Positions 1 through 62,457 of a stretch of 64,000 nucleotides of DNA are shown one piece after another. The stretch is from Phyllobates terribilis (lineage: Eukaryota), in the NCBI RefSeq assembly GCF_046119375.1, contig NW_027366852.1:1-64000 (forward strand), read 5' to 3'. Made by a program: the position numbers and the translations under genes. Within the stretch, counting starts at the first letter, position 1; each line of letters opens with the position of its first letter. Below the pieces are notes generated by a model that was not told the DNA's origin, searched no databases, and worked only from the letters and a program-made list of their open reading frames with translations.

Positions 1-1025
1 TTCCCTCCTTCAATTCATATTCAATTGACTTGTTTGATGCGTGTTTTTTGTTTGCGGGTGAAGAGGAATCTGGCTGGAACTCTCTGTACGAGCGGCTGAA
101 GAAGACCACAATGAGGTATAATTTCTGTTTTTTTGCCTCATTATGGGCGATCCTTAAGTAATTATATAGTTTCTGATTTTTCTGTTGACATAGGATGCTA
201 TCATATCACATCTCTTGCAAGTGGAGAAGTTGATGCCATTGCAACACAGTGTAGCAATGTCAGCACAGAAAATACAACACTGCAATTTAGACCAAAAACG
301 CTGAGTCACTATCCTATTAGTGTGCCAACAGCAGTGCAATCAAGATCCAAGAAGAATACCATGAAGAAGTAGCCTTTGTCTAGTTTATTGATGCAAACAT
401 TAGGTATCATTTTGTGGCTTTGTATGTTGTCTTTGTTGCAACTTAAAGGTTGTCTTTGTGCAACCATTTTGAGAAATGCTGCAAACATTAGCAATGTGTA
501 ATGTTCTAGGTTGCAGGATCTATGTTGTGTTTGTGAAATGTTGCAGTGTGTAATGTTGGTGTAATGTTAGCATTGTGTAATGTTGCAATGTGTAATATAA
601 GATGTGTGTTTCTGGTATTCAAATCTTGTGTTTGTGAAAGTATTTTGTCTATGTTGCATTTTTGCTGAACATTTGTGCATTTCCCCAAAGCTTCAAAGAT
701 GCTCTTTTTAGTCAAAAAGTGACCCACTTTCTACAAGCCCCTTCAATCACTTATGCATTCACCTACCGCATTGTGGACCATACATACACATGCATTTTTC
801 ACGGTTTTACTGCACAATTTCTCCACATACATGCACCATACATGCACAAATGATTTTTTCCAAGTACTTTTACTCCCATATATGCATTGCTCAACGACAC
901 ATCTTCCTCCTCTTTTACAAATATATTTACTCCCTAACTCCATCATTAAAAGGACACATCTTCCTCCTCTTTTCCATCCATTTCACTCATTCATTTTTCT
1001 CCCTTTTTACCAACCCTCTCCCAAA

Positions 1026-1602
1026 ATGCAGTCTGGTCAAAAGACAAGCCTTGTTTACCTGATTTCCAGCTCCTCGTCTTCATCCTCATCATCACTGCCA
1101 AACGAGGAGTACACCACAGATGATGAAAGCCCCACCACACAAGCTCCTAATATCAACATCATTGAGCTTGACAAACAACCAAATCCTAAGCGAGCTCTAC
1201 AAAGAGCTGAAAACTGCATCACAATGCCAGAAATCAGCTTTGTTACATCCATGAAGAGAAGTTTTGTCCTCGATGACTGTCGCTTGGTATTGTCTTGTTA
1301 TTTCACATGTTATTTCATTCTACATGTTTGTCTACTAACTTGTGTCTCCCATGCAGCCTCTTCCACTTGAACATTGTGAGCAGTTTCTCCACAACTTCAA
1401 GAATCAAACGGTTATGCTCTTGTGTGGCAATCAACAATGGGCTTGTCTTCTCAAATTCAGCAACAACCAGTACAGGTTGGGAAGTGGTTGGAGAGATTTT
1501 GTTAAAGACACATGATTGGTCAAGCATGATGCAGTGATGTTTCAAAGAGACGATGGACATGGTGGAGGTTCCTCATACAAAGTTCGCATCTTCAAAGCTT
1601 GA
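1026..1602 (+). pseudogene. B3 DNA-binding domain (REM-like) gene, 2 coding exons (1026-1286, 1357-1602), one premature stop
   Basis: A GT-AG intron at 1287-1356 with a CTAAC branch point joins FVTSMKRSFVLDDCRL to PLPLEHCEQFL...WACLLKFSNNQYRLGSGWRDFVKDT*LVKHDAVMF...YKVRIFK, matching the B3 consensus (GW..FV...L..GD...F). TGA at 1513-1515. Confidence 0.8.
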
Positions 1603-1963
1603 TGGACGGAAGAAGTACCAATCTGTTGCTTTTTATGTGTGTTTTTAGGAGTGGGCTTTTTTTGTGTTTTTATGATTGTTGAATCAACATGTTTGAACTC
1701 TTTTGGTTGTGTTATGAATCAACATGTTTTAATTACGGAAACCTTATTTTATTGCTTGTATGAATTAATTAAAGCACATACTAATTTGCTGAGAAAATAT
1801 TTTATTAGACCACATACTAATCACCAACAAAGTAACACAAATCGATGGAAAATTTGCTGAGAAATACTAATTTATTAGACCACACAAATTCCATTACAAT
1901 AGGTCGTCATTACAAAAGCATAAACCTGAAAATCAGAGAACTAAAGCATGATCAATATAACAC

Positions 1964-2347
1964 CTAAGCCAACAGAATCTTCACCGCCACAATAACAAAA
2001 ACAAAACCAACAACAATAACTATGTCTATCCGATGCCCACTGGATTTTCTTGCAAGCTCCAACTCCTTAGCACTCAAAGATTCTTCAAGTTTGATCACAA
2101 TCTCCTCCAACTCCTTCTTCTACTTCACCAATTTGTATATGACATTAGCTGGTTGTGGCTCAAACGGATCATCAACCCAAGCAAAAAAATTGCATCCTTT
2201 GTTTGACCTGAAGTTAGCACATCCAAAGAATCTCCTTCCATAGTTTGGAGTAGTGTGTGCAATACTCATTTTTGCCTTAACTTTACAAAAACACATAATT
2301 GCCACATTACTGTTATATGAATTAGAGGATCCTGATCTAGACGACAT
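1964..2347 (-). pseudogene. GRF-type zinc-finger protein with coiled coil and C-terminal hydrophobic anchor, one premature stop
   Basis: CFC...AHTTPNYGRRFFGCANFRSNKGCNFFAWVD is the zf-GRF motif. Reading through TAG 2120-2122 gives KKELEEIVIKLEESL...IDIVIVVGFVFVIVAVKILLA and a stop at 1964-1966. Confidence 0.85.
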
Positions 2348-3565
2348 CACCTTCTTCAATCAATTTGTCCATAAATCATTGATTCAGAGCATAACTAAAA
2401 AGCACATACTGAATTACATGAATAAACTGAAAGCACATATTGAATTACATGTCCATAAATCTGTCCATAAATCATTGATCTTATTCCATAGGCAGAAATT
2501 ACATGAACAAACTGAAAAGCACATAGTGAATTCCAAAAATTCATCAAAAATTCACAACAATCTCATTTAAACACCACATCCCGCAAACTGTTAATCCCTC
2601 AAGCACATCCACATAAACCACAAAATAAAGCTTCATCATACCAAAATTATACTAACCAAGCAAAAACCTGGGAGAAAACTACCTCAAACCCCCACATATA
2701 CCTCTTGTTCCAGCCGCTCTTACCGAGAGTTCCAGCCAGATTCCTCTTCACCTGCAAACAAAAAACACGCATCAAACAAGTCAGTTGAAGATGGATTGAG
2801 GGAGGGAAATTGATCGAAGGAGAAGATTAAAGAAAACCCCTAAAAAATGCTTACCAATTGACGCTGAATTGGAGCTGAATCGAAGGAATTTGTTGAAGAG
2901 CCCTAAAAATCGAAATCGAAATGGAAAACTATTGGAGCTGGGGGTGTTTTTAACGGGTTGCATGAAATTACAACCTGATAAGAAATATAATAACAAAAAA
3001 ATATATAAGAGGTGGTTTAAAATAATTGATAATATACATGGTAGTTTTTTTTTAAAAAGTCATTATAATGTTAAAACTATTAACACACATGTGCATTCTG
3101 CTATTTGTTTTGGCTTGGCCGGGAACGGCAACTCCCAATTGTCATCCGTGTCCCCGCGAGTTTCTCTTGGCCGAAGAAACAATGGCGGGGTTTCTATCAT
3201 CTCATGGATTTTCTCTTTTCTGCCATCATTTCTCAACACACCCTCTCTGCAGACGAAGCGAAGGAGAGGGAGAAACAGAAAGAAGACATACGTTTTCTTT
3301 CTTTTCTTTCCTTCCTTCCTTCTCGTCATATTCTTCTGGGTTCAACTACAACGCCCGCCCTGCTGTGCTCATCCCCTGCATCACCCTTCCGGATTATGAC
3401 CCTCCAGTCCTGGTGAGCATGATCCATCTAAAATCGTCTTTTTTCTGTTACAATTTATGAAATCACTGTGCTAATCCTGAAATTTCACTATTACAGAAAG
3501 CAAAATCATTTTTGTTTTTTTTTTGTGTGTTTTGCAGATGATTAATTTGTGAAGGTTTGTTGCTA

Positions 3566-3663
3566 GAGGGTGATTTTACGGTCACTATTCATTGTAGGGT
3601 CATTTTGGACTTTGAGTTGTAGGTACACTTGTAAAGATAGGAGGTCATTCAATTGTAAAGTTT
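3566..3663. mobile_element. Possible DNA-transposon terminus (MULE-like TIR end) just upstream of the kinesin start
   Basis: Composition resembles MULE termini by eye (reverse strand AAACTTTACAATTGAATGACCTCC...CAAAATGACCCTAC). No partner arm in the window. Confidence 0.3.
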
Positions 3664-3691
3664 GATGAGGTGCGGTTCCGTGGAGGAATCC

Positions 3692-6600
3692 ATGGAAGCG
3701 GCAGCGAAAATTTTCGTTTCAGTTAGAATTCGGCCTTTAAATGAAAAGGAGACTGCAAGGAATGAGGAAGTTGAATGGGAATGCAGTAATGACAAAAACA
3801 TCATGCACAAGAACAATGCATTTAGTCCTGATAGATCAATGTATCCTTCTTCCTACTCATTTGGTAAGAAATCATCATTTGCCATGATTGAACTGAAAAT
3901 GTTGAGTTGAGGTCTTTTTGACAATTTGACTGCAACTTGAACTGGATTTGGTATCAGATAAGGTCTTTGGGCCTAATTGCTCAACCAGGCAGGTTTATCA
4001 GGAAGGAGCTAAAGAAATTGCCCTTTCAGTTGTTGGTGGTGTTAACTGTAAGTGTGTATATCATCACTGCTACAGATATCATATTCCGGTTAATACCAAG
4101 TATAGAAAATCACTATGAAATTAAAATGAGTGAAGAGCAGTTTATTCTTTTTGAACCATTTATGAAGGATTTTGGAGTTTTATTCCTGATCATGTTCTTG
4201 ACAGCAAGTGTTTTTGCATATGGACAAACAAGTAGTGGAAAGACATACACCATGACAGGAATCATGGAGTATGCAATGGCTGATATTTTTGACCATGTAC
4301 ATAAGGTAAAGACTGCAGAGGCTGTTCTTCGTATCTTCCTTCACTAAAATGGCTGGAATATAGTGGGTTTGCTGAATTTTACTGTACAAAGATTTATGCA
4401 TTCCTTGCAGCATACTGAAAGAGAGTTTGTTATGAGGTTTTCTGCTATGGAGATCTATAATGAATCGGTGAGAGATCTACTTTCTGTGGATGCCACTCCT
4501 CTGAGGCTTCTTGATGATCCTGAGGTAATGTCTTAATTTCGTAATCAACAACAATCTTAAGGTTTTTGTTTACCCTGATATTAATGTTTGCCTTTTCGGT
4601 TTAATTTTCAGAGGGGAACGGTTGTTGATAAACTCACGGAAGAGGTTGTAAAGGACTGGAATCATCTAGCTAAGCTTCTTTCTGTATGTAAAGGTAAGAA
4701 CTTTATTGTGATCAGATGAGACGCAAGCTTGCGTAACTTTTTTGAAGTAAGTTCGAATAAATTTTCCAGCCCAACGGCAGATTGCGGAGACATTACAGAA
4801 TGAATCTAGCTCCAGATCTCATCAAATTATAAAACTAGTAAGACTTTTCCTTACCAAAGTACTCAGTATTCTACTCTCTGAAGCAATAATTTTAGAGATA
4901 TTCAAGAATCTAGGCCTTTTTAACAAATCCATAGTAAGAGGAAGTTTCTGCTGAAATTAGACCTTAAAATGCGAAAACTTCGCAGCCGAACCTTGCTATC
5001 CAAATCATGAACAATGAGTATTGAATTGTGAACCTAGAGTATGAATTTGTGAACCTAGTACAAAGACAAAGTGATGCATTGGATATTTTGTAAATAACTC
5101 AAAATTTCCTTTCCCTTTTTTTAGTAGGTTCACAAATTTATAGTCTATATTCATGATTTGATACGCTATGTTCATTATTTGAATAGCGAGGTTCGGGTGT
5201 AATTTTTTTCGCATTTTAACCTAATTCTCCATGGTAACACTAATAAAGGCAATAAAAAAGGTACATATCTTCTTGTCTGATGATTTGAATCTGCTCTTAG
5301 ACAGTTGAAAGCCATGCACGTGAGGTATCTGGCAAGGATAGATTGAATGCCCTTTTTGCCTCTGTGGTAAGAATCTTATTAATATGAAACAACCTGGATG
5401 GTACACTATACAAATTTTAATATTCAGACCCTTTCGGCTGTAGAATTTCATTGATCTTGGAGGAAGTGAGCGTGCGTCACACGGCTGCAGCTTGAAGGAA
5501 GCTTTGCATATTAACCACAGCCTAATAACCTTCGAAGCCGTTATTTATAAGCTAAGGTGTTAAATACTTTTATTTTGCTTGTGTTGAAGTATATCCTATT
5601 CGTGCGAATTCATCGATTACAATGCATAAATTATTTGCTCTGCATGATCTTGTTTATCTTTGTGCAGCAAACGAAGAAATGAGGTTATTCCGTACAGAGA
5701 ATCTAAGCTTACACGCATACTGCAACCTTTTTTAGGCAGCAACAGTAGAACAGCAATCATTTGCACCATAATCCCTGCACGAAGCTATACCGAGCAGTCA
5801 AGAAACACCCTACTTTTTGCTACGTCTGCTAAACAAGTCAAAACTAGTGCAAAAATTAATGTCCAGCTCCCTGAGAAAGCATCAGCAAAACTTGAAAATG
5901 AGCTTACAAATGCAGAATCTGCTCTCAGGACTGATTCTGTTACCCCTGAGAAAGAGAAAGAGCTTCTGATACACAAGGTACGTACATATCAGAACGAGAG
6001 GAGTTTATTGAAATACCGTGCATTTAGGAAGAGAGAATTTGTAATTGCATTATAAAGATAATTTAACATTATTTTGAAAAAATATAAAACTCGACTTTGG
6101 AATTTCTGTATAAAAAGCCTACCTAAGAGCATCCACAATGGTGATCTTCTGAAGATCTTAACATATAAAATAAAAGGAGAAGTGTTTTTTTGTAGAAAAA
6201 ATCAGATAAGAATTTATCTTTATTTCATTTAGTCTAGTAAAAAGAATAGAAAAAGTTTTTAAGAAAATCTAGGTTGTTAGAACAATTCTTAATTTCTTAT
6301 GGTATGTGGAAGAAAGAAAAAACAATAAAAATAGTACAAGAATTTAAGAGAGAAGATCAGCATTGTGGATGCTCTAACAATGTCTGTGAGAAACGGGACT
6401 TAATTTAAATATCATGCATAAAGCCAAACATGCTATTTTATGTAACTAACTTATAGATCAAACAGACCCTCAGTTGTTTCAAAATGGATAATAAGTATAC
6501 TTATTTATCCGATTTCTCGTTCTTTTAATGCTGTAGTTAGAGAGACAAATTATGGAACTCACGTTACAGCGAGATCTCGCCCTTTCACGTATTAAAGATG

Positions 6601-8518: not shown

Positions 8519-9725
8519 CTCAGTAAGGCTTCTGGGGGATTATAGGGGTTTTGGTAGTATTGCTATTAGGAAGCTCACTCATTGCTAAGTTCATTTTATT
8601 AACTTTCTTGAAAGCTTATACTCCCTCTTATCTTTTACTAAGAAAGTGTTATTACTTAAGCTTATCATTCTTCTTTCTTGAATGAGGAAGAAGAATGCTA
8701 TATTTTGTTGATTTACTAGAGACTTTGAATACTAACATGGAAAGATGAGAGCTTGAAAAAGAGAAAAATCCGAAAGTCATGTAGATTGGCTTTTGAAACG
8801 CTCTCTTATGTTCAAAAGTCTTCCTCCTCCGCGTGACTCTTCTTCCTGTTTGTGGGAGGGGCGTTTGCTCCTCCCCGCCGTCGTTTCCATGAACCTCCCC
8901 CCAGATCTTGAGAAAATCAAAGTCCTAGAAACCTATAATCCCCCTAATTGCCTTAATTAGAACCTTTTAGCCCCTAATTTTCCCTCCCCCTTTCCATAAT
9001 CCTAGACATGCAAAACCCTAGATCCGCTTTGGTTCCATCAATGACATCCACTGGGGTTCCTCCAAGGTGGACTCCTTAGATCGGTGTTGGAAGCTTTGCT
9101 GGCGTGGCAAGTGGCCTTTGGTGCTTTCCCGTCGATTGATCTTCCTTCGTCCCGCTCCTCTCCAGGTCAGTTTTCGTAATCCGATGACTCGTACTCGATT
9201 ATTATCTCTGTTGAGTTGTAAGCCTAGGGTTCGGTCTCGATTTATGGGTGGAAACCCAGATTTTTGCTCATGGAACCTATTAGCCCTGGTTTCTGGGTTT
9301 TCCCCTCTTAATCTGAATCATCGAGCCACCCTAATCTTGCCTTCTGTTTTATTCGGCGATAGCCAAATGTTCTCCGGCGAAAGCCAAATGACTCCACCAA
9401 CTCAAAGTAACACATTAACTAATCTCAATTTCTTCTTTAATCTCTATGATAACTCAGCATTTAATTTCAAGCTTAATAAATTTAATCATTACCTTCTTAA
9501 ATGGGATTGTATTTCCGTTAGCTATTGGCTTTGCAGAATATCATATCATGACTTGCCTAAGACCTTTCATGTGATCATACCCAGTAAGATTTCCCAGTTT
9601 AACATTCTAAAACACATAAACAAACATATAAAAACTATCAACATTCTCTACATAATAGTAAGGACGAGTTTTTGTTACAAAATAAACACTACAAATAATT
9701 CAAAAATATATTCTCAAAATTCCTA

Positions 9726-9983
9726 CTCCCTCCGTCCCCTTTTAAAGATCTCATGTAAAAACACAACACTATTCATAGTTTATGGTTCTCATCCCGATTA
9801 CTCTCAATGTATAAGAAATAACGTAGTCATATGTGGTATAGTTTTATTCGTCTCAATAAGCATTTTAATAATATTAAAATCTTATAATTTTTGGAGTTGT
9901 ATTATTAGAGATATTAACGATAAAAACACGTCTCGGCGAGTGTATCGGGTTGAAATGAGACCTTTATTTAGGGACAGAGGGAG
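9726..9983. mobile_element. Stowaway (Tc1/mariner) MITE
   Basis: CTCCCTCCGTCCC...GGGACAGAGGGAG with a TA TSD on both sides. Confidence 0.93.
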
Positions 9984-10495
9984 TATAAGCTAAACTCTCA
10001 AGATTTGAATCACACTAAATTCTCTAAGTTTCCCTCTACTAGCTTAGCCCTCTTGATCTCTATATATAGAACCCCTCTAAGATCATCTAGTTCACTCATT
10101 CATCCCATCAAACACATTCCACTTCCACTGCAAACCACCCATTCTGGCAACTTCCAAGCACAAGTTTCCCTCATGCCTGAACTCATCTATGCAGAAGCGG
10201 TCATGAATTTCAATCTACGAACCACCCTCGCTCCACCCTACAATTGACCCCATGAATCTAGCTGAACCCACTGAACCACTTCCCAACATTATCTCCTCCT
10301 CTGATGAACCACTTCCCCAAATTCCTCCCATCTTCAACACCACCTAACTGAGCAGGACCTTGAACTTTTCTCGTCTGAAGATCCTTCCTTTCCCACATAG
10401 TTGTCATCGCAACTAGCCCTAGTAACCGATCAAATGGTTCCCATCCCCAATCATCCGTACCACAACCCTTATGAACTCCCAGAAGTCAAGAAAAG

Positions 10496-11772
10496 ATGAA
10501 TCACTTGCAGCAATTATTGCTCCTCACTCGAATGGTGGACTCTGAACCCTCAATTTTTGCTGCTACAACCATTACGAAGCTCAAAGACACTTGGAAAGGC
10601 ATCAAAGGAGACGTGAAGGTGGACGAGCTTGGGAACAATTGGCTGCTCTTCTCTTTTGCAAACAAAGAAGCCCGCGATTTTGTGTGGGAGAACCGCCCTT
10701 ATCACGTGCAAAGTAAGCTTATGCTCGTCATCCCCTACTCTCATGACTTTCATCCTATTTCTTCCCACATAACGGTTGTACACATATGGGTTCGTCTCCT
10801 TCTCCTTCCCTTTGAACTCCAGAATGACAAGGCTCTAGAGCTCATATTAAATGGTAATAAGGCTGGTTCTTTCATCAGAAATGAAGAAAGCTACAACATA
10901 AAAAACAAAAGAAAATTTGTGAGATTATGTGCTAATATGTACATATTGTAGGTATCAAAGGTCAACTTCTCAACTTCAAAATGTGGTATGAGGGCTATTT
11001 CCCGGGTTGTGGTTGTTGTGGGAAGGTGGATCACCTTTTCGATGTCTGTTTTCTCAACAACCTGCCGGCGATCATCCACGCCTTCAAACCTCATGAAACT
11101 GAAGAACAGGCTGAATAAAGTAAGAAAACTGTCGATTTCTTCATTGGCCCATTATTACAAAGACTTTGCCCTAATATGCAAGTTCAGCACAGGCCCAAAG
11201 GCCCAAACTTCATAACCAAAAATGCGTCATCCTTTAGCCCAAAAACTGAAGCTTCATCCCTTGATCCCTCTGAAGTGGCTCGGTCTAAATCTAAGGGGAA
11301 ATCTATCCTTGTGGTTGATCCTGCTCCTGTCACAACAGCCCAAGTCCCACAACCCACTAACCATATAACCTACCAGCTCTCTACCTATCCAATGCAGAAC
11401 TACGACCCTGCTTTGTTCGGGCGTCAGTAGTTTACACATGTACCCCAAGTCCCAGTAATGATGAACCCGCTCTTCCGCCCTCAGAACATGCATTTCCCTG
11501 TGTCGCAGTCTCGCCCGGGGGTTCGTTTTCAGCATCAACCGTTCTATTACCACCCGCAGTTTCATATGGCTCCTCCGGTCTCTCCGGTGGCTCAACTGGT
11601 GGCATTGGGGCAGCCATCCGAACCGGCTGGTTCACCCAAAATCTCTGACAATTCAAACAATTCCATTGTGCAGAAAATTCATAACATTAATATTGCGGAT
11701 AAAGAGAAACCATCCAGATCCGAGGGCGATTCGAAGAGAAAGGATTTCGACGATGACGCCACCACCCAGTAA
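10496..11772 (+). pseudogene. LINE ORF1 (DUF4283-type RRM region plus CCHC zinc knuckle), fragmented
   Basis: KLKDTWKGIKGDVKVDELGNNWLLFSF...RPYHV...HIWVRL, then YEGYFPGCGCCGKVDHLFDVC at about 10990-11050, then a Pro/Gln-rich tail. Confidence 0.82.
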
Positions 11773-12529
11773 CAGAGTAATAAAAAGCCTCAAAAGAGCA
11801 GGGCCCGGAACAAATCCCAACCAGATCAGTGATGTTGAGCTGCGCAGTTGATTATGGTCTTGTCCTCTTCTCTACGCTTAAATTTTCAGTCATTTTCACT
11901 TCCAATGAAACAAACCTTGACACAACACTAGACAAGTTCAGTTTCTTCTTGAGCAGTTATTATGTTATTAGAACTGAATATCAATGTATTTTTTCTGTTA
12001 ATTTTGAATGGAAAGTTGGCATTGTTTTCTGCTATTTTCTTTGGCTGCTCTTTTTGGTTTGGGTTGTGCCTTTGTGGGTTCTATGTCAAACCCATGAGCT
12101 CGGTTATCTTCTTGTCAGTCTTGCCGGTGTCTCTTTTGTTTCCAGGGGTGGCGCTGGTGCCCTTTTCTAGTATTTTTATGTTGTTTTTCTTTGCAGTGGT
12201 GGCGTTGTGGCCCTATTGTAGTGTTTTATTTATGCATTAATTTCCTGTTATGACACAAACCTTGACAATAAAGTATACAATCTAACTTTTTGATTGAATT
12301 ATAACCGGGACTGTGGTGGTTCGTCGGATTGTGGTGGTTCGTCTTAGCTTTCCTCAGTCAATTTCCTTTTTTTTGGGTTGCTGAGATCTTTTCACTAGCT
12401 TCTCATCCTGTCAAATATGAATTGATAATCAGAGAATTAGGGACTCTTGCTGAGTTCCTTTGGCATTGGCTATATTCATGTTTTCTATTGCTTTGGACTT
12501 GTAGTAGGTCCTTGTCAATGTTTTCATAA

Positions 12530-15500
12530 ATCTTGCCTATTGGAATTCTCGAAATATTCATAGATCAAACTTTATAACAGAAATTAATTTTCTCCAAAAA
12601 ACTAACCACTTTGATATTCTTTGTATTGCAAAAACAAAAGCGGACTCCATGCCTCCGCAATCCAAAATTAAAAGAATGGGATTTGACTCGCTTTTTTGAT
12701 GTTCGGCGGTCTCCACTAGGGGTGGCCTCTGGATCCTTCACAAGAAAGATTTCAATACAAAAACATTCAAACTTTTATTAGTAATCTGTTATATGCCAAA
12801 GACGAAAGAATTCTACTTATCTTTATTTACGTCCCGTCGAAAGAAGAAGAAAAGGATAATTTTTGGAACAACATAGAAAGAAACATCATCTGTTTGAACC
12901 TCCTATGTATCTTAATTGGTGACTTAAATGATATAATCTCCCCGTAGGATAAATTGGGTGGAGTTGACCCTTCCCTAGAAGGTTCCTTCGACTCAACAAC
13001 TTAATAAATAATTTAGGTCTCATTGACTCAAAATTCTCGGGATTTCCCTTTACATTGCGCAAAAACAATACTCAAAGCAATAACATTCTAGAAAGAATAG
13101 ATCGAGTGCTCATTCATAACTCCTTACACAACATCATTTCAAGTTCAATCACTAAGCACTTCCCATTCACTGCTTCTGATCATTGTCTCATACCAAAAAC
13201 TAGTTTCCAAAGTCTGAAGATACAAAATGAATGGTTCATACATGTTCAAATCTTCAAACAAACTTAAAACCCTTAAACTATATTCAAAGGATTGGGGTAG
13301 AAAAAATACTAATCACAATTTTGAACAACTTAAAAAAACTGAAACCCAATTCGAGGGGTTATATGAAAACCTTCTTCACAACCCTCATAATGTCCGCTAT
13401 AAAACCCTTCTTGAGAATCACTACAGGAAATTTAACCGTCTTCTCTCCTACCAGACCAAGTTATTGAAAAATAAGGCAAAGATTAATTATTTCAATCAGG
13501 CCGACAACAACACTAGCTATTACCACTCTATAGCTAAATCCGCTCATTTCATCAAGCTATTATGAGATTCCAATCTTCTGGCGGTGATTTCCTCTCTTCT
13601 CAAGGTGAAATTTCGAACCGTATCATGAAGGAAATGTTGAAACATTTTACTAATGGGTACCTCCGTCCACCTTCAAATCAAGAATTGAGTATAATCCCGA
13701 CTATCATTTCGGATTTGACAACTTCTGTTTACTTAAGGCCCCAAACATAGAAGAAATAAAGAATGCAGTGTTTGAACAACCACCAGACAAAACACCGGGC
13801 CCAGATAGCTTCCCGATAGACTTCTATAAAAGATTTGACACATTCTTCGACCGTACCTTTTTGAGGTTGTCAAAGAATTTTTCCATTCCAAGAGAATTCT
13901 CTCCCACTGGAACCATGCTTTCATTGTTTTAATACCTAAAATCGAAAATCCTACCAATATCAATCATATTTGCCCCACTAGTCTTTGTAATTCTTCCTAC
14001 AAAATACTATCGAAACTGCTGCTAAACAGAATAGAACCACTTATGACAAAACTCATTTCTAAATTTCAAAGTGCATTAGTAAAAGGAAGACTAATTCATG
14101 ATAACATCCTTGCAGCTCATGAAATATTCCACTCTTTCTAACAACAACTTTAAAACAACAAAATGGATGGTGATTAAAATAGACACGGAAAAAGCTTATG
14201 ATAAACTAGATTGGAATTTCCTCATTTCAGTGCTTCGTGCCTTTTGTTTCTCCCAAGACTGGATCACTATCATTCAACAACTCATATCTACCTCCAGACT
14301 ATTTGTACTTACAAACAATCAGCCAGGCCCTGAATTCTCTCCCACCTGTGGAATCAGACAAGGTGACTCTATTGCCCCATTTCTGTTTATCCTCGCAATG
14401 GACTTTTTTGCTAGATCACTACATCTCCGTTTCTTAGCTTTGCGGACGACACCCTTATCTTTGATGATGCAAATTCCACAAATATAAATTATATAAACTC
14501 ATTCCTCCAGAATTTCTCGAACATTAGTGGTCTAAAAATTAACTATAGCAAAAGCTCTATTCAATTCTCAAAAAATGTGTCAAAATGATCTACTAAAAAC
14601 TTGGCTAGTATAATGAATATCCTTATTACCACCAAACTAGAAAAGTACCTGGGAATCCCTATCGTTAATGGGAGGATCAACAAACAAAATTTTGAGTCTT
14701 ATAAGAACAACTTAACGAAACAATTATCCTGCTGGAAGGTCAACTCCCTTTCTCAAATAGGAAGGGCAGTCCTGATCAAATCTAATTTATCTACTAAAAT
14801 GAACCATGTAATGCAATGCTTTCTGTTACAAAAAAGGCCTCTACGAAGAATTTGATGAAATCCATAAACGATTTTTTGGAATAACTACAACATGAACTTT
14901 CATCCTTTTGTCTCTTGGGACAAGATCTGTAAACCAAAAAGTGAAGGAGGGTTGGATATCTAATTGTCCTTTGAACACAACAAAGCTCTTCAAATGAAAC
15001 TTTTGTGGCGTATCCTCTCGAATCCTGACTCCTTATGGTGCTCGATTATTTATGAAAAATACATTAAAACTAACCGGCTTGAGGATATTCAGAAATCTCA
15101 CAAATTTTCTTGGCAATTCAGTAGACTCCTATCAATCTAATCGGAATTTTTTCCAATGTTCTGTAGTCTGCTGGAGATGGTCTTCGCATCTCTTTCTGGA
15201 ATGACCACTGGATTCCCCACATTGACATCAAGGAACACTTTACTCCTGCCCTAGCTCATATCAAATAGTTGGTTTCATTAATAACTCTAGATAGTGGGAC
15301 ATTGTGTCTCTCAGACATTTTCTTCCTGAAAATATTGTATCAAGTATTGCAAAAATTTATACCCCTTACACTCCGGTTGCTAACTCAGTAATCTGGTATC
15401 CCAATCAATCAGGAATATTCTCCTCAAAATTAGCTTTCAACTCAGTACGCATGCGCACTAACATAAATTTCGATGATATATTGTGGCAACCGGATATTCC

Positions 15501-16424
15501 ACCAAAATAAAACCGTTCCTCTGGAAAGCTTTTTCGGATAACCTCCCAACTACTTACCATCTTAACCATTTTTTCCATAAGGTACCTTACACCTGCCCGT
15601 TATGCAACCAAACAAACGAAAACACTACCCACCTATTTTTCCAGTGCAATTTCACAATCACCACATTCAATATCTTAGCAGATCAACTTGGAACTCATTA
15701 TACTATCCCAACTGAAAACGACTTTCTTCAGGCACTATATATCTTTCAGACGACTAATACGAATTGTAATGTTTCACTCTTCTTGTGGTGTAACATCTGG
15801 TTTTCCTGTAACAACTTTGTGTTTCGCAATGAAGAGTGTAAATATCTGACAACCCATGAAAAAATAAAAGCGAGAGCACTCTCTCAGTTGAAAATGTGGA
15901 CGCCTAGAAAACAAAACACGAGTAAAAACAGAGTAGTACGAACTTGTGCATCCTCCCAGCCTAGGTCTGATGGATCTTCCCGTGGTAAGGGATGGTCCCC
16001 CCCTCCTATTGATTGGATTAAGCTCAACTTTGATGGAGCATTTTTCTCTTCCGGCAGCACTATTGGATACATCATTAGAAATCCACAGGGAAACATCATC
16101 TCTGCTCACCAAAATAATATTAATGTTTCGTCCCCTCTCCAAGCTGAAGCCCTTGCTGCCCTGGCTGGCGTAAGGGAGGCCCAAGTCTTGGGGTTTCAGA
16201 AGGTTGTTGTTGAAGGAGATAACGCTACAGTCATTCAATCCTTGCACCGAACATGGAAGGTCCCTTGGAATATCACTCATATAGTCAAAGACATTAAAGA
16301 GAACCTTTTGAGTTTTCGGGAGTTTAAGATCTCCCTCATCTACAGAGAAGTCAATGCAGCTGCAAACTTCATAGCCAAAAGTTCTTGGAATGATGAAGAT
16401 ATCAATGTAATCATAAAGTTATAG
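12530..16424 (+). pseudogene. LINE ORF2 (APE endonuclease, reverse transcriptase, zf-RVT, RNase H), fragmented
   Basis: WNSR, GDLN, LERIDRVL, ASDH; PGPDS, DTEKAYDKLDW, GIRQGDS, frameshifted FADD; CPLCNQTNENTTHLFFQC; WSPPPIDWIKLNFDGA, EGDN, REVNAAA. Confidence 0.9.
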
Positions 16425-16539
16425 AAAAGTAGATTTGATTCTACTAGATTCCTGACATTACACTTAAAGCTGAGAAGGGTGCTGGATTTTGTTAAGATCA
16501 TCCGTTTTGATGATTTAAGAATTCCGGTTTAGGAAGTCC

Positions 16540-16867
16540 TTTGTATCATTTGTTAAACATATATATAGATTGATCCGGAAATTGGGTGATCCAAACTCGA
16601 TCCGGATAGTTAGTTTTACATGTATTTTGTGATCATCGCTACCATAAAGGTTATTACATATTTTATATAAAAATGATATAATATTACTATTTTATTATTG
16701 AAAATTTATTTTTCCTTGAAAAAAGTTTTAAAATCATTAAAAAGAACAATCTTGATCAGTATTGTCAACCCGAGTCCGACACGACCTAAAGTTTTATCGA
16801 CCCAGTTGACCTGAATCTGGACAACTGGAACTCGAAGCTGACCCACTCGATCAATTTGCTACGTCTA
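16540..16867. mobile_element. hAT-like MITE remnant (one recognisable end)
   Basis: Clustered ACCCGA/GACCC-like subterminal motifs ending in TTTGCTACGTCTA, similar to hAT termini. The other end was not found. Confidence 0.4.
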
Positions 16868-16883
16868 GAACCAAAATTAAACA

Positions 16884-18114
16884 TGATAAAATGAAAAGTA
16901 ATAAAGATCAACTATGAGAATTTTATACAACATTGAAGACCAAGTTTAGAGGATCAAGAAATTCAAGGACCAAAGAAATGAAGATTTAAAGACCGGAGAG
17001 ATTAGAAGACCAAGATCAACAAGAATTGAAGACGAAGTTGTTGATTTGCTGAAGATGTGGGTAGCGCCTGTGGCCACCTAGGAGCACCCGCTGCCCTGAA
17101 GAGTTGACAATAATAAAGTCATATTAAAGGCAATGACCACTTGCTCTAATAGCAGCACTCACCACCCAAGTTGAATCCCATTTCGATATATTCTGAACTT
17201 GTATTCTATCTTTATTTGTTTTAATTGTTTCAATTAGTTTTGTTTTATATTTTTAACAGTTAATTAATTTAGGATTTTTAGGTTACTTCGAGTTGGAGAA
17301 AACATTATTGAGAACATCTTTCTCTGGCTCCTCTCTAGACCTAGTTGCATTTGAGATTTCCATGAAGAATTAATCCTACTTTGTTTAGTTAGGCTAGTGA
17401 AGCTTTCATTTAATTGAGTTGTGAGATTCTTATTCTTTATCTATTCCTTGGATTTTATCTTCTCTTGTGCTAATTAAATATGATTGATTGTTATAGTTTC
17501 TAGTTTGATGAACTAGTTATTGTCGCTTATCCATCTATTGCTAGGTTTAATTCTTGTTGGTTGAGCATATCTATTCTGTAGTGGCGATTGCATCTTACTA
17601 GTATATGGTTGTCCTAGTCTATTCTAGAAGAGAATCGATTTATAAACTAACAAACTATCTAGTTGTTTTATGCTAGTTTATATCCTACTAAATTCCCACG
17701 CTTAATGTTGCTATTGAACTGAATCAGTGATAGTTTCATGGTTATTTAGTTATCTAGTTTTAATAGTATCCGGTTGTGCTATTAGTTAATATAGAACAAG
17801 AATAGGAACTTCCACTGCATGAAAGATATAGAATAATTATCTAAGATCGACTTTCCATTTAAAAGCGGATACTCATCTAGCTAAGTCACCTCTAATCATA
17901 AGACATTCTTAATCCTTCGTTTTTAGTTAATTGTATGTCAGATAGAAACAAACGAACAAAAACCTCTTGTTACTTTGACTGACACAATTGCATTGCACAA
18001 GATATCTTTACCTTCTTCCGGATCTCGACCCTTACTTCCTAGGATTTCTTGTTAATTGTTTTAGTTCGTTAGGACATTTGCATAACGTGAATGACTAGCG
18101 ACGCTTTTCAAACA
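16884..18114 (+). mobile_element. Degenerate gypsy (Athila-like) LTR or solo-LTR remnant
   Basis: LTR-like layout (purine-rich U3, AT-rich U5, GATCTCGACCCTTACTTCC near the end, terminal ...AAACA) next to Athila gag remnants. Boundaries approximate. Confidence 0.5.
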
Positions 18115-18149
18115 TTATAAGATTATATCGTGTTTATATTAGAAAGTGG

Positions 18150-18662
18150 TCGCTCACCTTCACCTTCTTCTTGCTTCCGAGCTCATGCTCGTTCTTTTTT
18201 ATGCATGTATGTTTCAAGAATTTGGCATACTGAGGCATAGATTTGAGTAGATTAAATAGAGGGACGTTTACCTCGACGTCTCGGAACATCTCAATTATGT
18301 CCTTCTCTTGCACCAGTGGTTTGGTGCGCTTTAGTGAAGACGATAATAGTGCAACGGGTTTATACTCGGCCAGATTGCTCCTAAGCCTGAAAAGTTATTA
18401 TATAAACTGCTCCTAAGCCTGAAAAGTTATTGTAAGGCCAATCTGGAATGAGTATAAACTCGTCACACCATTCCCGTCTACACTAAAAAGTGCACCAAAC
18501 CACTGGATCAAGAGAAGGACATAGTTGAGATGTTTCGAGGTGTCGAGGAAAACGTCCCTCTCTCTAATCTACTCAAATTTATGCTCTGACATGCCAAATT
18601 GTTGAAACATAAACAAAGAAGGAGCATGAGCTCGGAAGCAAGAATAAGGTGAAGGTGAGCGA
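18150..18662. repeat. Inverted repeat, arms of about 225 bp (18150-18377 and 18439-18662), 61-bp loop
   Basis: TCGCTCACCTTCACCTT...GTTTATACTCGGCCAGATTG is the imperfect reverse complement of CAATCTGGAATGAGTATAAAC...AAGGTGAAGGTGAGCGA. The loop and the start of the right arm hold two copies of CTCCTAAGCCTGAAAAGTTATT. Confidence 0.88.
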
Positions 18663-24378: not shown

Positions 24379-27300
24379 ATGAACTCATCCAAAGTGATAC
24401 TTGGAAGGAAGGAGCAATGTCTTCTAGACTGCGCAACGACGCACACCATCTTGACAAACAAAGAGTACTTTACTCACTTGAAAGCCTATGAAGGCAATGT
24501 CACCACAATACCAGGTGCATCTACACTCATAGAAGGCTTTGGAAGATCTATTGTTATACTCCCAAGAGGAACAAAATTTATTATAAAGGACGCATTATCT
24601 CAAAGAAACTTATTGAGTTTCAAGGATGTGCGTCATAATGGGTTTCATATGGAAACCGTGAATGAAAATGGAAAAGAATACATGTGCATCATAAGATATG
24701 AATCTGGTCTAAAGTAGATCCTTGAAAGGATGCCAGGACATACCTCCGGATTATATTATACATATATTTATCCGTGTGAGGTCAATGCAACAATAAATAA
24801 GAGGTCATTTGACCAAACTGCTTTCACCTTGTGGCATGACCGTTTGGGTCATCCAGGGTCAGCAATGATGCATAAAATCATAAAGAACTCACTTGGACAC
24901 CCATTAAAGGACATTATGCTCCTATCGTCCAATGACTCTAATTGCAGTGCTTACTCACTCGGAAAACTTATTATAAGACCTTCCAAAAACAAAATAGCAA
25001 GTGAGACACCTGCATTTTTGGAAAGAATCCAAGGAGATATGTGTGGACCAATTACTCCACCATGTGGACCATTTCGATATTTTATGGTGCTAATTGATGC
25101 ATCCACACGTTGGTCACATGTAACTCTATTATCAAGAAGAAATGTTGCATCTGCTAAGCTACTTGCTCAAATAATCCGACTGAGGGAACAGTTCCCGGAT
25201 TATACAATAAAGAAAATTCGGCTTGATAATGCAGGCGAATTCACATCTCAAACTTTGAATGACTATTGTATGTCCATTGGAATTGATATAAAGCATCCAG
25301 TAGCTCATGTTCACACACAGAATGGTCTGGCCGAATCCTTGATAAAGAGATTACAACTAATCGCTAGACCATTACTAATAAAATCGAGATTACCAGTGTT
25401 AGCATGTGGACATGCCATATTACATGCAACAGTTTTGGTTCGATTGAGACCATGTGCAAACCATGAATATTCCCCACTACAATTAGTATTTGCAAGGAGC
25501 CAAATATTTCGCATGTAAAGGTATTTGGATGTGTTGTTTATGTTTTCATTGCCCCACCTTTGTGTACAAAGATGGGTGTGCAAAGAAGATTGGGAATTTA
25601 TGTTGGTTTCGAATCTCCTTCAATCATTAAATATCTTGAACCAACAACCGGTGATTTATTTATAGCAAGGTTTGTTGATTGTCATATTGACGAAAGTATA
25701 TTCCCTAAGTTAGGGGGAGAAAATAATGGTGTGAATGCACATGGAAAAGAGATTACATGGAATGCAGTAGCATTATCTCAGCTTGATCCGAGAACAAAAG
25801 TGTGTGAACAAGAAATACGACGGATCATACACTTGCAAAATGTTGCAAATCAGTTACCATATGCATTTGTCGAATCAAAGAAGGTGACTAAGTCACATAT
25901 ACCTGCAGCAAATGCACCTGAAAGAATTGAAATACCAACTGGACAGGAAGAGGCATCGATTGCAAATGAGTCTACAACAGGCAGGAAGCGTGGTAGACCA
26001 CCGGGTTCAAAAGATTTGAAACCAAGGAAGTCAAAGAACCCAAAGGGTATAGTAAGAAATGTCACAATAGCTTCTGAGAAAGATGATAAAGTCAAAGAGA
26101 TTGAAAATGAAAAAATCTCACAAGAAAATGACATCCTAGATACTGATCGAAATATTGACAACTCTGAGATTTTCATAAACTATGTATACACAGGTATACA
26201 ATGGAATAGGAAAGATGTCATTATTGATTATACATTTTTCTACTCAGTATCTATAGACATTGTGTCCGAAGATGAGGATATTGAGCCAAAATCGATCGAT
26301 GAATGTCGTCAAAGGAAAGATTGGCCAAACTGGAAAGAGGTCATACAGTCAGAACCAAAATCGCTTGAAAAGCAAGAAGTTTTTGGCCCCGTGGTCCATA
26401 CACCAAAGGGTATAAAGCCCGTGGGTTACAAATGGGTTTTCGTGAGAAAACGGAATGAGAAAAATGAAGTTGTCAGGTATAAGGCAAGGCTTGTAGCCCA
26501 AGGTTTCTCTCAAATTCCTAGAGTTGACTATGATGAAACATACTCTTCTGTGGTTGATGCAACAACATTGAGGTTTCTCATTGGCATGACTATATTTGAT
26601 AAATTACATATGCGTCTTATGAATGTCGTGACTGCATACTTATATGGGTCACTTAATACAGATATCTATATGAGAGTTCTAGAAGGAATAAAACTGTCTG
26701 ATAACTCTACCTCGCGGATTATTCTCTATAAAACTAAGGAGGTCATTGTATGAATTAAAACAATCTGGAAGGATGTGGTACAACAACCTTAGCGAATATC
26801 TTGTGAAGGAAGGGTATAAGAATGATGCCATATGCCCATGTGTTTTCATCAAGCGATCCAAAAATGGATTTGCCATCATAGCAGTCTATGTTGATGACTT
26901 GAACATTGTTGGAACTTCTCATGAAATTCAAAAGACTGCAAAATATTTGATGAAAGAGTTCAAGATGAAAGATCTCGGTAAACCTAAGCTTTGTCTTGGT
27001 TTACAAATTGAGCATTTGGACGATGGAATATTTTTCCATCAATCTAATTACGGTGAGAAAATCTTGAGAAGATTTAATATGGATAAGGCACATCTCTTGA
27101 GCTCTTCCATGGATGTTCGATCCTTTAATGTTGATAAGGATCAGTTTTTCCCTAGAGAAGAAGATGAAGAAGTTCTCGGTCTTGAAGTACCATATCTAAG
27201 TGCTATCGGTGCTTTAATGTATTTAACCAACAATACAAGACCAGATATTGCTTTTGTAGTAAATTTATTCTCTAGATTTAGTTCCACTCCTATAAGGGGA

Positions 27301-27885
27301 CATTGGAATGGGATCAAACACATATTTTGCTATCTTTGAGGCACACATAATTTGGGATTGTTTTACCGTATCCAAAGAAATGTCATCATTGTTGGATATG
27401 CAGGTGCAGGTTACTTATCTGACCCACATAAGGCCAAATCACAAAATGGTTATGTGTTCATATGGAGGCACATCCATATAATGGAGATCGAATAAGAAAA
27501 CAGTGACAGCAACATCATCAAATCAAGCGGAGCTGATTGTATTATATGAGGTAGGGAGAGATTGTGTGCATTACGAGCAATGATTACATTCATCCAGAAA
27601 GAATGTGGGATGAGGCCCATCACTAGTGGGCCAATGGTCCTATATGAATACAACTCAGCATGTGTTGCTGAGATGAAGAAAGGATACATAAAGGAAGATC
27701 GTACAAAACATATTTTATCCAAATTCTTCTCTACCCATGAGTTGGATGAAGATGGCGAAATCAACATCCAATAGATCCGATCAAGTGATAATTTGGCTGA
27801 CATGTTCACGAAGTCATTAAATCCAAAGAATTTTATGGAACTAGTATCAAGGTTTGGAATGTGCAGACTCAGAGACACTCGTTGA
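24379..27885 (+). pseudogene. Bianca pol (protease, integrase, RT, RNase H), disrupted
   Basis: CLLDCATTHTIL; WHDRLGHPG, IQGDMCGP, IRLDNAGEF, QNGLAES; YKARLVAQGFSQ, IAVYVDDLNIVG; RNase H remnant ending near 27880. Confidence 0.9.
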
Positions 27886-32632: not shown

Positions 32633-33799
32633 ATGCAATCTTGTCAATCAATGCAGCAGCATAATCTTCCCTTCATGGCGTCGTCTTACATTCCCGGCGA
32701 CTTATTGATCCTCATCCTAAGGCTACTCACCGTCAAAACCCTATTAAAACTAAAACGTGTCTGCAAATCCTGGAAAAACCTCATCGATTCAACCTCCTTC
32801 ATACTCCATCATCTAGTCCAAACCCAAACCCAAACCCCCGCCATTCTCGTACACCAAGAACTCGCTAACTTCAGTTACATCCTCATAGATCCGAAGAATC
32901 ACAGATTTTACAACACCATAACCGGCCCACACGGTATAAGATTTCCTCCAAACCCTACTGTTCCTTTCAATCTCCGGCCAATTAGCACTATTCACGGCGT
33001 TGTTTGTCTCTACGACTTTCACAATAAACTCCTCCTCTTATGGAACCCCTCCATCCACCGCCACGTCACCATTCCTCTCCCTGTAATCTGTCTCAATTTT
33101 GATCAACGAGGCCATTACTGCGGTTTCTGGATAGACCCATTTACCAAACAGTTTAAAGTTGTCATATTTTGCTTCAAAAGAAAGACATTTGCTTTGTATG
33201 TTTCCAAGAAGAAAGAATGGGTCCAATTTGCAATGAGCCCAGATGTGTACGCAAATTACTGTCAATCACCACAGGTGTTGATAGACAAAATTGCTTACTG
33301 GACTGCTACTAGCATAACGCGCCGTGTGTTCATAGTTTTCTATGATTTTGGTAAAGATGAATCTGGGAAGATTGATAAGTTGCCGAAAGTTAAGAACAAG
33401 AACATGCATGGGGGACTGAATGCGTATGTTTCTAAGTGGTGCGGTTTACTCGCAGTGGTGTATACCTACAAGTCTGATCTCTTTCTTTTTAGTGATTGTG
33501 AATGTGATGTATGGGTGTTGATGCTGAATGGATCATGGAGTAATGTGTCTAGTTTTAGACTGATTGAATGCGTGTCAAGAGTTTTTTGTGTTTTCGAGCT
33601 TGAAGATCAGAAAGAGTGGGTTTTAGCGTCAAATTGGTATGGAGAATTGCTGGTGTATGATCGTGAAGATAGAAAGTGCAGTCGGTTGGTCTCTTCGGAG
33701 AAGAAGTATGATTGGTCTGGTTGTACTAGTTTTGTTGGTGTGTTTCCTTTAGCTTATGACTTTGTGGAAAGTCTTGTTATACCTGATCACACGTGGTAA
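32633..33799 (+). CDS. F-box protein with F-box-associated (FBA-type) domain, intronless, 388 aa
   Basis: IPGDLLILILRLLTVKTLLKLKRVCKSWKNLI is the F-box motif. HGVVCL...LLLWNPSI and a beta-propeller-like C-terminus follow. The ORF is uninterrupted. Confidence 0.93.
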   Translation: MQSCQSMQQHNLPFMASSYIPGDLLILILRLLTVKTLLKLKRVCKSWKNLIDSTSFILHHLVQTQTQTPAILVHQELANFSYILIDPKNHRFYNTITGPHGIRFPPNPTVPFNLRPISTIHGVVCLYDFHNKLLLLWNPSIHRHVTIPLPVICLNFDQRGHYCGFWIDPFTKQFKVVIFCFKRKTFALYVSKKKEWVQFAMSPDVYANYCQSPQVLIDKIAYWTATSITRRVFIVFYDFGKDESGKIDKLPKVKNKNMHGGLNAYVSKWCGLLAVVYTYKSDLFLFSDCECDVWVLMLNGSWSNVSSFRLIECVSRVFCVFELEDQKEWVLASNWYGELLVYDREDRKCSRLVSSEKKYDWSGCTSFVGVFPLAYDFVESLVIPDHTW

Positions 33800-62200: not shown

Positions 62201-62457
62201 TCACCGACTTTGGAATCTCTATGGGCTCGATTGAAATAAGGTGTGACAACACAAGCACGATCAACATCTCAAAGAATCATGTGCACCACTCTCAAACCAA
62301 GCACATTGACGTGCGTCATCACTTCCTTGGAGATAATGTGGAGAAGAAGCACATCGAGCTCACCCATTGTAGAACTGAGGATCAAATAGTAGACATTTTC
62401 ACCAAGGAATCGTTCATCAAGCTAAGACTTCACTTGGGCTTGATCCCCTTTCATTAA
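59276..62457 (+). pseudogene. SIRE pol (protease, integrase, RT, RNase H), several stops
   Basis: WYIDSGCSCHM; MDLC, RSDHGTEF, PQQNGVVERKNRTL; [27 protein letters not shown]; [24 protein letters not shown]. Confidence 0.93.

Follow-up and report, generated by a model that had tools for sequence, protein, structure and literature searches.

A repeated block with inverted arms and convergent B3 and GRF zinc-ribbon genes, probably a decayed Mutator-like element

The left end of a 64,000-nt window (positions 1 to 64,000 of contig NW_027366852.1, deposited under Phyllobates terribilis in NCBI RefSeq assembly GCF_046119375.1) is occupied by a repeated block of roughly 3 kb, in which inverted arms enclose two small genes lying tail to tail, one for a B3 DNA-binding protein and one for a protein with a GRF zinc ribbon, a coiled coil and a hydrophobic tail. 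We favor reading this block as a decayed, non-autonomous member of a Mutator-like element (MULE) family that carries the accessory genes typical of its lineage, an interpretation that we hold with reasonable though not full confidence. In other plants, relatives of both genes adjoin Mutator-type transposons or lie inside them, which makes it probable that the B3 gene belongs to the transposon and was not captured at random from a host. An earlier note, made from the letters of this DNA, had likewise described inverted arms around two tail-to-tail genes, and repeat search, blastn and gene models all confirmed this layout. The note had treated the two genes alike, and here it needs correction, since GRF as an accessory domain was already in print (PMC12973397); what appears to be new is the B3 gene in a probable MULE of the GRF-carrying type.

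Arms, extent and repetition of the block

A repeat search paired positions 1-98 with 2711-2808 at 93% complementarity, and blastn lengthened the pairing to 1-105 against 2703-2808 (91.5%, E 8e-37), with no second copy of the block elsewhere in the window, which contains no runs of N. The arms given in the earlier note (1-98 and 2711-2808) are therefore real, but 98 nt is not their full length. The left terminal inverted repeat (TIR) is cut by the window start, so that only its inner part (1-105, + strand) is visible, and the right TIR comprises the part complementary to it (2703-2808, − strand) and a probable outer part (2809-2975, − strand), the partner of which lies to the left of the window. 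The right end at 2975 is inferred and approximate, with a range of 2,930-3,010.

Both the repetition of the block and its extent were read from sequencing depth, window positions 1-6000 being compared, at a likeness of at least 85%, with the contigs of three runs, from organisms A, B and C, and with raw DNase reads from organism B. The flank at 3200-4800 behaved as single copy, with a depth of 2.9 in X1 and about 0.2-0.9 reads per bin and strand in X9, and one X1 contig, which starts at 2870, matched 2870-4964 with no mismatches. The block from 1 to about 3000 was many-fold deeper than this flank (13-142 in X1 and 2-42 in X9), the left arm standing at 20-40 times the single-copy flank, and the excess depth ended where the single-copy flank begins. 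The bin at 2801-3000 equaled the arms in depth, and a variant at 2900 recurred in other copies, in many of their contigs and reads. From this, the repeat passes 2808 and extends to roughly 2,930-3,010, which gives a probable full arm length of about 265 nt. With a right end at 2975, the right-hand flank would begin TGATAAGAA. Since summed contig depth does not equal copy number, we limit our statement to tens of related copies. Several dispersed copies, as are characteristic of MULEs, are indicated by excess depth in the contigs of all three organisms and in the raw reads of organism B and by the many variant contigs that match the element, the copy loci themselves not being seen. Within the block, depth peaked over the ends (1-500 being high) and the GRF gene, was lower in the B3 gene and reached its minimum at 601-1000, and the lower depth of the B3 part reflects either greater divergence or the presence of this part in only a subset of copies. 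The excess depth shows the block to be repeated, and the earlier description of a TIR-bounded element without a transposase holds.

On the GRF-gene strand, the right arm holds signals resembling splice sites. A donor, GTAAGC, occurs at 2854; next comes a tract rich in T with an acceptor, CAG, that ends at 2752, and after 28 nt (2751-2724) there is another donor, GTAAGA, at 2723. These signals may delimit a micro-exon of a 5′ untranslated region (UTR) inside the TIR. At the mirror site in the left arm (55-90), the acceptor reads CGG and the donor GTACGA. Such signals, along with words resembling telo-boxes, would recall a host 5′ UTR, and one could suppose on this basis that the block is immobile, with a promoter or 5′-UTR segment locally duplicated in inverted orientation around two ordinary host genes. 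We give this supposition almost no credence, as it is the whole block from 1 to about 2,975, beyond the arms alone, that is many-fold over-represented in the reads of several organisms, and the read excess stops at the single-copy flank.

Non-coding DNA separates each arm from the gene that is read inward from it. The region upstream of the GRF gene (2348-2702, − strand) is T-rich on the − strand, contains AAAGCACATA three times and may, we infer, be a 5′-UTR intron. The left subterminal region, which runs up to the B3 gene (106-1025, + strand), holds a short array of 15-nt repeats at 532-596 and three CATGCA words of the RY type, a small count, within 58 nt (789-846). These words precede the B3 ATG by about 200 nt and fall partly within an 11-nt tandem duplication.

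The gene pair, its relatives and its decay

Both genes of the block are complete and small, and each is read inward from one arm and carries a single premature stop. The GRF gene (1964-2347, − strand) begins at an ATG at 2347 and, apart from a TAG at 2120-2122, has a frame that stays open to 1967 and closes with a stop at 1964-1966. It matched Pfam Zn_ribbon_GRF with an E-value of 1.7e-11 (44.5 bits against a cut-off of 25.9), and the cysteine ligand pattern of a GRF zinc ribbon, C.C...C...C, is retained in the alignment. The TAG directly follows the zinc ribbon, where the coiled coil begins, and relatives carry Q at this site (as in contig L002, introduced below). GRF zinc ribbons bind DNA in APE2, NEIL3 and TOP3A. 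Database searches for both genes were run with separate exons or pieces and not with a spliced or read-through protein. Those with the GRF piece gave no match in a word-based protein search and generic plant GRF clusters only in the ESM Atlas, and the 75-aa GRF product had no exact match on record.

The B3 gene (+ strand) consists of exon 1 (1026-1286), a 70-nt GT..AG intron in phase 0 (1287-1356), the position of which is kept across the clade described below, and exon 2 (1357-1602). Exon 1 opens with an ATG at 1026, encodes a Ser-rich N-terminus with a motif resembling a SUMO-interaction motif (SIM), followed by the start of the B3 domain, and ends in ...DDCRL; exon 2 contains an in-frame TGA at 1513-1515 and reaches its normal stop at 1600-1602. 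The TGA falls inside the B3 domain, at a site where relatives carry E, N or D (L002: E). In these respects, the spliced B3 gene with its 70-nt intron, the GRF, coiled-coil and hydrophobic-tail gene and the single stop in each are as the earlier note had read them.

The B3 domain is a plant-specific, sequence-specific fold that reads double-stranded DNA, for which assays are well established. The 52-aa exon-2 piece from the window matched Pfam B3 (PF02362) at E 4e-4 and 20.7 bits, which by itself is below the curated cut-off of 30.1, and its membership of the B3 superfamily follows from its relatives: its identity is 60% with P0001 and 44% with P0011, both of which match Pfam B3 (P0011 at 33.9 bits, above the cut-off), and it matches bona fide multi-B3 proteins at E 1e-12. 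A word-based protein search with exon 1 gave no match, nor did the ESM Atlas with the B3 query; the 205-aa open reading frame (ORF) had no exact match on record, and a PDB sequence search returned no significant match for either B3 piece, the best being At1g16640 (PDB 1yel) at E 1.5. At the N-terminus, a short hydrophobic run is followed by a Ser/Asp-rich stretch (window 1026-1100), and the same pattern is found in the clade at 59-110 and 2176-2230 of L002, at about 70-160 of L004 and at about 110-150 of L013, with examples such as LVYLISSSSSSS, IVDLVSSPSSD, VIVLSSGDDSS and FFDL..SSSDDSSSSSSED. Judged by its residues, this pattern would be that of a phospho-regulated SIM.

An exhaustive HMMER search with the exon-2 piece gave 22 matches, the best of which were short ORFs of 73-120 aa at 40-60% identity, the remainder being multi-B3 proteins (from Linum grandiflorum, Phtheirospermum japonicum and others) and a few spurious repeat proteins. 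The short relatives have in common a start of the form ...CRL, intron, LP..H..., a YRLG.GWR.FV core and a C-terminal Y.V.IFKA. In an unrooted tree of 29 segments and 82 columns, with outgroups drawn only from the query's own matches, eleven small two-exon B3s formed a single clade (support 99/99) apart from all multi-B3 domains sampled, and the window sequence fell into a subclade with L002a and L009 (89/81). The phase-0 intron position is retained in at least eight loci, the end of exon 1 and the GT donor being kept in L002, L003, L004, L005, L010 and L013, and many clade members are multi-copy and decayed. Two further candidates, L006 and L007 (P0022), were set aside as ordinary multi-B3 genes, which the tree places outside the clade. 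The clade members share the B3 domain with REM-family proteins and with small single-B3 host proteins such as At1g16640, and are set apart by their small two-exon genes, by an N-terminus that is Ser-rich and SIM-like and by the conserved C-terminal Y.V.IFKA. By its placement in the tree, the window B3 gene appears to belong to a separate clade of small two-exon B3 genes and not to be a recent fragment of a host REM gene, an origin that the earlier note had counted among those that would undo its proposal.

The pair itself was found again on two unrelated contigs, both collinear with the window. On Logan contig L002, DNA identity is about 70% and only B3 exon 1, B3 exon 2 and the GRF coding sequence can be aligned; on ENA contig L009, a GRF gene of 127 aa and a B3 exon 2, both intact, converge. 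The spacer between the convergent genes (1603-1963, 361 nt in the window) has equivalents of about 260-330 nt in L002 and L009, so that the stop-to-stop distance is 260-360 nt in all three. All context contigs other than L008 (see below) are shorter than 3 kb, and L002 and L009 could be either host loci or transposon interiors. L002 also has a second B3 gene at 2176-2725, which is of the same two-exon type, more divergent, and oriented away from the GRF gene; its GRF N-terminus and the N-terminus of its first B3 gene each show one frame change (a frameshift or an extra intron).

Uncorrected pN/pS was 0.34-0.62 for B3 and 0.42-0.52 for GRF over all pairs, with bootstrap upper 95% limits below 1, and as pS is at saturation in these pairs, the true ratios are lower than those given. 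That the ratio is below 1 in every pair argues that both genes have been under purifying selection for most of their history, and the selection check proposed in the earlier note thus came out as purifying and not as neutral. The stops in the window copy would then be late events that leave both genes dead here. The ratio of observed to expected CpG is 0.34 in the element versus 0.66 in the whole window, and both stops would fit C-to-T decay of methylated DNA: the TAG is a single C-to-T change away from CAG, and our guess for the TGA is a derivation from CGA. The variants listed include a near-fixed difference at 2133 and none at either stop codon, which weakly suggests that most copies share both stops.

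Links to Mutator-type transposons and competing explanations

The link between the B3 clade and Mutator-type transposons comes from L005, in which the clade member P0011 lies tail to tail with a transposase gene, 760 nt apart. The transposase has MULE (E 1e-9) and SWIM (E 6e-7) domains and a zinc knuckle, and the B3 gene beside it occupies the position that mudrB has in MuDR. No homologue of this transposase was found in the window.

For the GRF gene, the search reached Rhododendron proteins, and one source locus, L008, is a MULE of Rhododendron molle, complete and about 9.3 kb long (9358-18636; CM046398.1, about 50.537-50.546 Mb). Its TIRs (9358-9493 and 18501-18636) are 136 nt long at 96%, and a perfect 9-bp target-site duplication (TSD), ATTTGTATT, stands on both sides; MULE TSDs measure 9-11 bp. 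The L008 transposase, with DBD_Tnp_Mut, MULE and SWIM domains, is 34-41% identical to that of L005, and its coding frame is interrupted, giving at least two ORFs. Convergent with the transposase gene is a gene for a GRF zinc ribbon, coiled coil and tail, of the same build as in the window, with a GRF identity of about 39% between L008 and L002 and, over the zinc ribbon, of about 41% (tblastx) between L008 and the window. L008 contains no B3 gene. A 2025 survey of 1,007 plant genomes counted Zf-GRF among the domains that recur in proteins other than the transposase encoded by active TIR transposons, and it assigned 57.6% of the active clusters to MULE (PMC12973397). No link of B3 to MULE or MuDR accessory genes was found in the literature searched, the coverage of which was incomplete. 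The MULE family with a B3 accessory gene that the earlier note had proposed is supported in part, by a clade member beside a MULE transposase (L005), by the pair on two contigs and by a GRF homologue within a MULE (L008). An autonomous partner with the same TIRs did not emerge from the sequences covered, and neither did a TSD for the window copy.

A TIR or foldback element from a superfamily other than Mutator, for which the MULE links in other plants would be coincidental, is in our view improbable. Neither a TSD nor a transposase has been seen for the element's family, as such an origin would allow, and its TIR likeness to a proven MULE is marginal. The arms, at least 105 nt and probably about 265 nt, are nonetheless typical of MULEs, and homologues of both cargo genes sit with MURA-type transposases. 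MULE TIRs usually measure at least 100 nt; here 105 nt are visible, and by reads the right repeat continues for about another 120-200 nt. Arms of at least 105 nt are unusual for hAT, CACTA, PIF and mariner elements. The match between the window and L008 TIRs, a local one of 41 nt built on the word GG[A/C]TGGAA, is too marginal for us to rely on kinship between them, and a metagenome scan with a 20-nt TIR word gave a single match, L001, which we rejected as due to chance.

A second alternative is a Pack-MULE, that is, a non-autonomous MULE that captured a convergent B3/GRF locus from a host and amplified it, the genes having no role for the transposon. The genes are host-like, with introns and their own start and stop codons; the pair in L002 comes with a further B3 gene and no inverted repeats, and the pair in L009 with nothing that marks a transposon. 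The absence of a stop-codon variant among those listed also means that both genes may have been dead before the family spread. We nevertheless consider this origin unlikely, though less so than a different superfamily. Pack-MULEs usually carry fragments, here there are two complete genes; each gene type was found separately with MULE transposases (B3 in L005, GRF in L008); Zf-GRF recurs as an accessory domain in active TIR transposons of plants (PMC12973397); and many members of the B3 clade are multi-copy and decayed, as transposon genes are. Word-based and HMMER protein searches found no host parent of the cargo genes. The window element resembles Pack-MULEs in that it lacks a transposase, is bounded by TIRs, is multi-copy and has gene-like content. 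It differs from them in its two whole genes, in a pair that recurs at about 70% DNA identity under apparent purifying selection, and in homologues that accompany MULE transposases, all of which points to family-borne genes and not to accidental capture.

Several observations weigh against our preferred reading, in which the block is a decayed MULE with accessory genes of its lineage. L005 is a 2.8-kb contig without visible TIRs, and its B3 gene could merely neighbor a MULE. L002 has no inverted repeat and has its second B3 gene 1 kb past the GRF gene, so that its layout would suit a host gene cluster as well as a transposon, and L003 and L004 have B3 without GRF. No transposase gene with matching TIRs was found, the window itself holding none and the genome not being open to search, and the TIR match to L008 is, as noted, marginal. 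Since the window begins within the left arm and so leaves out the left end of the element, no TSD can be read for this copy. The element was in none of the RNA runs checked. Lastly, k-mer and tandem-repeat scans found only small local repeats and no strong motif array to which a DNA-binding protein might attach.

To the right of the element, at a distance of a few hundred bases, is a kinesin gene (3068-4347, with a Pfam Kinesin motor in the ORF at 3937-4347), upstream of which the element sits, and MULEs typically insert upstream of genes. In or next to this kinesin gene, a compact inverted repeat at 4974-5208 (arms of 91 nt, 77% complementary and 53 nt apart) reached depths of about 480-620 in X1 and about 2,500-3,250 in X2, versus 3-12 in the flank, with many loose ends at 4937-4946, and it looks like a high-copy miniature inverted-repeat transposable element. 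Other content of the window, at 15483-16424, 24730-27339, 59881-62457 and 32633-33799, includes a reverse transcriptase fragment of the non-long-terminal-repeat type (RVT_3, zf-RVT), two pol stretches of the Copia type (rve, RVT_2) and, beside a pectinesterase gene, an F-box gene that is intact, consists of one exon and has its product on record for GCA_046119355.1.

Comparison with known systems and proposed mechanism

The closest architectural parallel is maize MuDR (mudrA and mudrB), which likewise has long TIRs and two convergent genes read inward, one of them a non-transposase accessory. The window element differs in having no mudrA-type transposase and in that neither of its genes is related to mudrB, and promoter activity of its arms is only presumed. 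Autonomous GRF-carrying MULEs such as L008 resemble it in the build of the GRF protein and in a GRF gene read inward from a long TIR, whereas L008 has a transposase and no B3, the window element has B3 in the transposase's place, and the TIRs of the two are not clearly related. Put together, the layout resembles MuDR minus mudrA, and the cargo resembles that of the published GRF-carrying MULEs plus a B3 gene. The comparison that the earlier note had drawn with VANC of VANDAL21 applies only insofar as the idea of that note holds, in which case both would be DNA-binding accessory proteins encoded by a transposon; the fold here is B3, and VANDALs lack long TIRs. A Pfam search found no VANC/DUF1985 match, and the element contains no phased motif arrays.

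In the mechanism that we propose from the arms and from the relatives of the genes, a MURA-type transposase of a related autonomous element would act on the arms and mobilize the block in trans. B3 and GRF would be accessory genes of the MULE lineage, in the position that mudrB has in MuDR. An intact B3 protein would bind double-stranded DNA; its binding sites may lie in the non-coding DNA of the element itself, or it may aid the transposase complex in locating its target. In the GRF protein, the zinc ribbon would be the part that binds DNA, and the tail would hold the protein at a membrane.

We would go further only tentatively, to an idea that we think has some chance of being right, though clearly less than an even one. 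The gene for a B3 protein with a SIM-like motif and that for a GRF, coiled-coil and tail protein may form a self-standing cassette, which selection has kept together across plant lineages within transposase-less MULEs. Such elements would borrow their transposase and bring their own proteins for DNA targeting or for countering silencing, with B3 as the sequence reader.

The accessory genes of MULEs (mudrB, VANB/VANC, Ulp1, PMD and GRF) are a site of adaptation to the host, and few of them have a known function. Binding to the transposase N-terminus has already been tested for MURA and MURB. If a clade of small B3 genes is indeed transposon-borne, the targets of its proteins would be directly readable, and some of the B3/REM genes in plant gene-family surveys would be transposon genes. 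The copy in the window is dead, and its value is as a pointer to the family.

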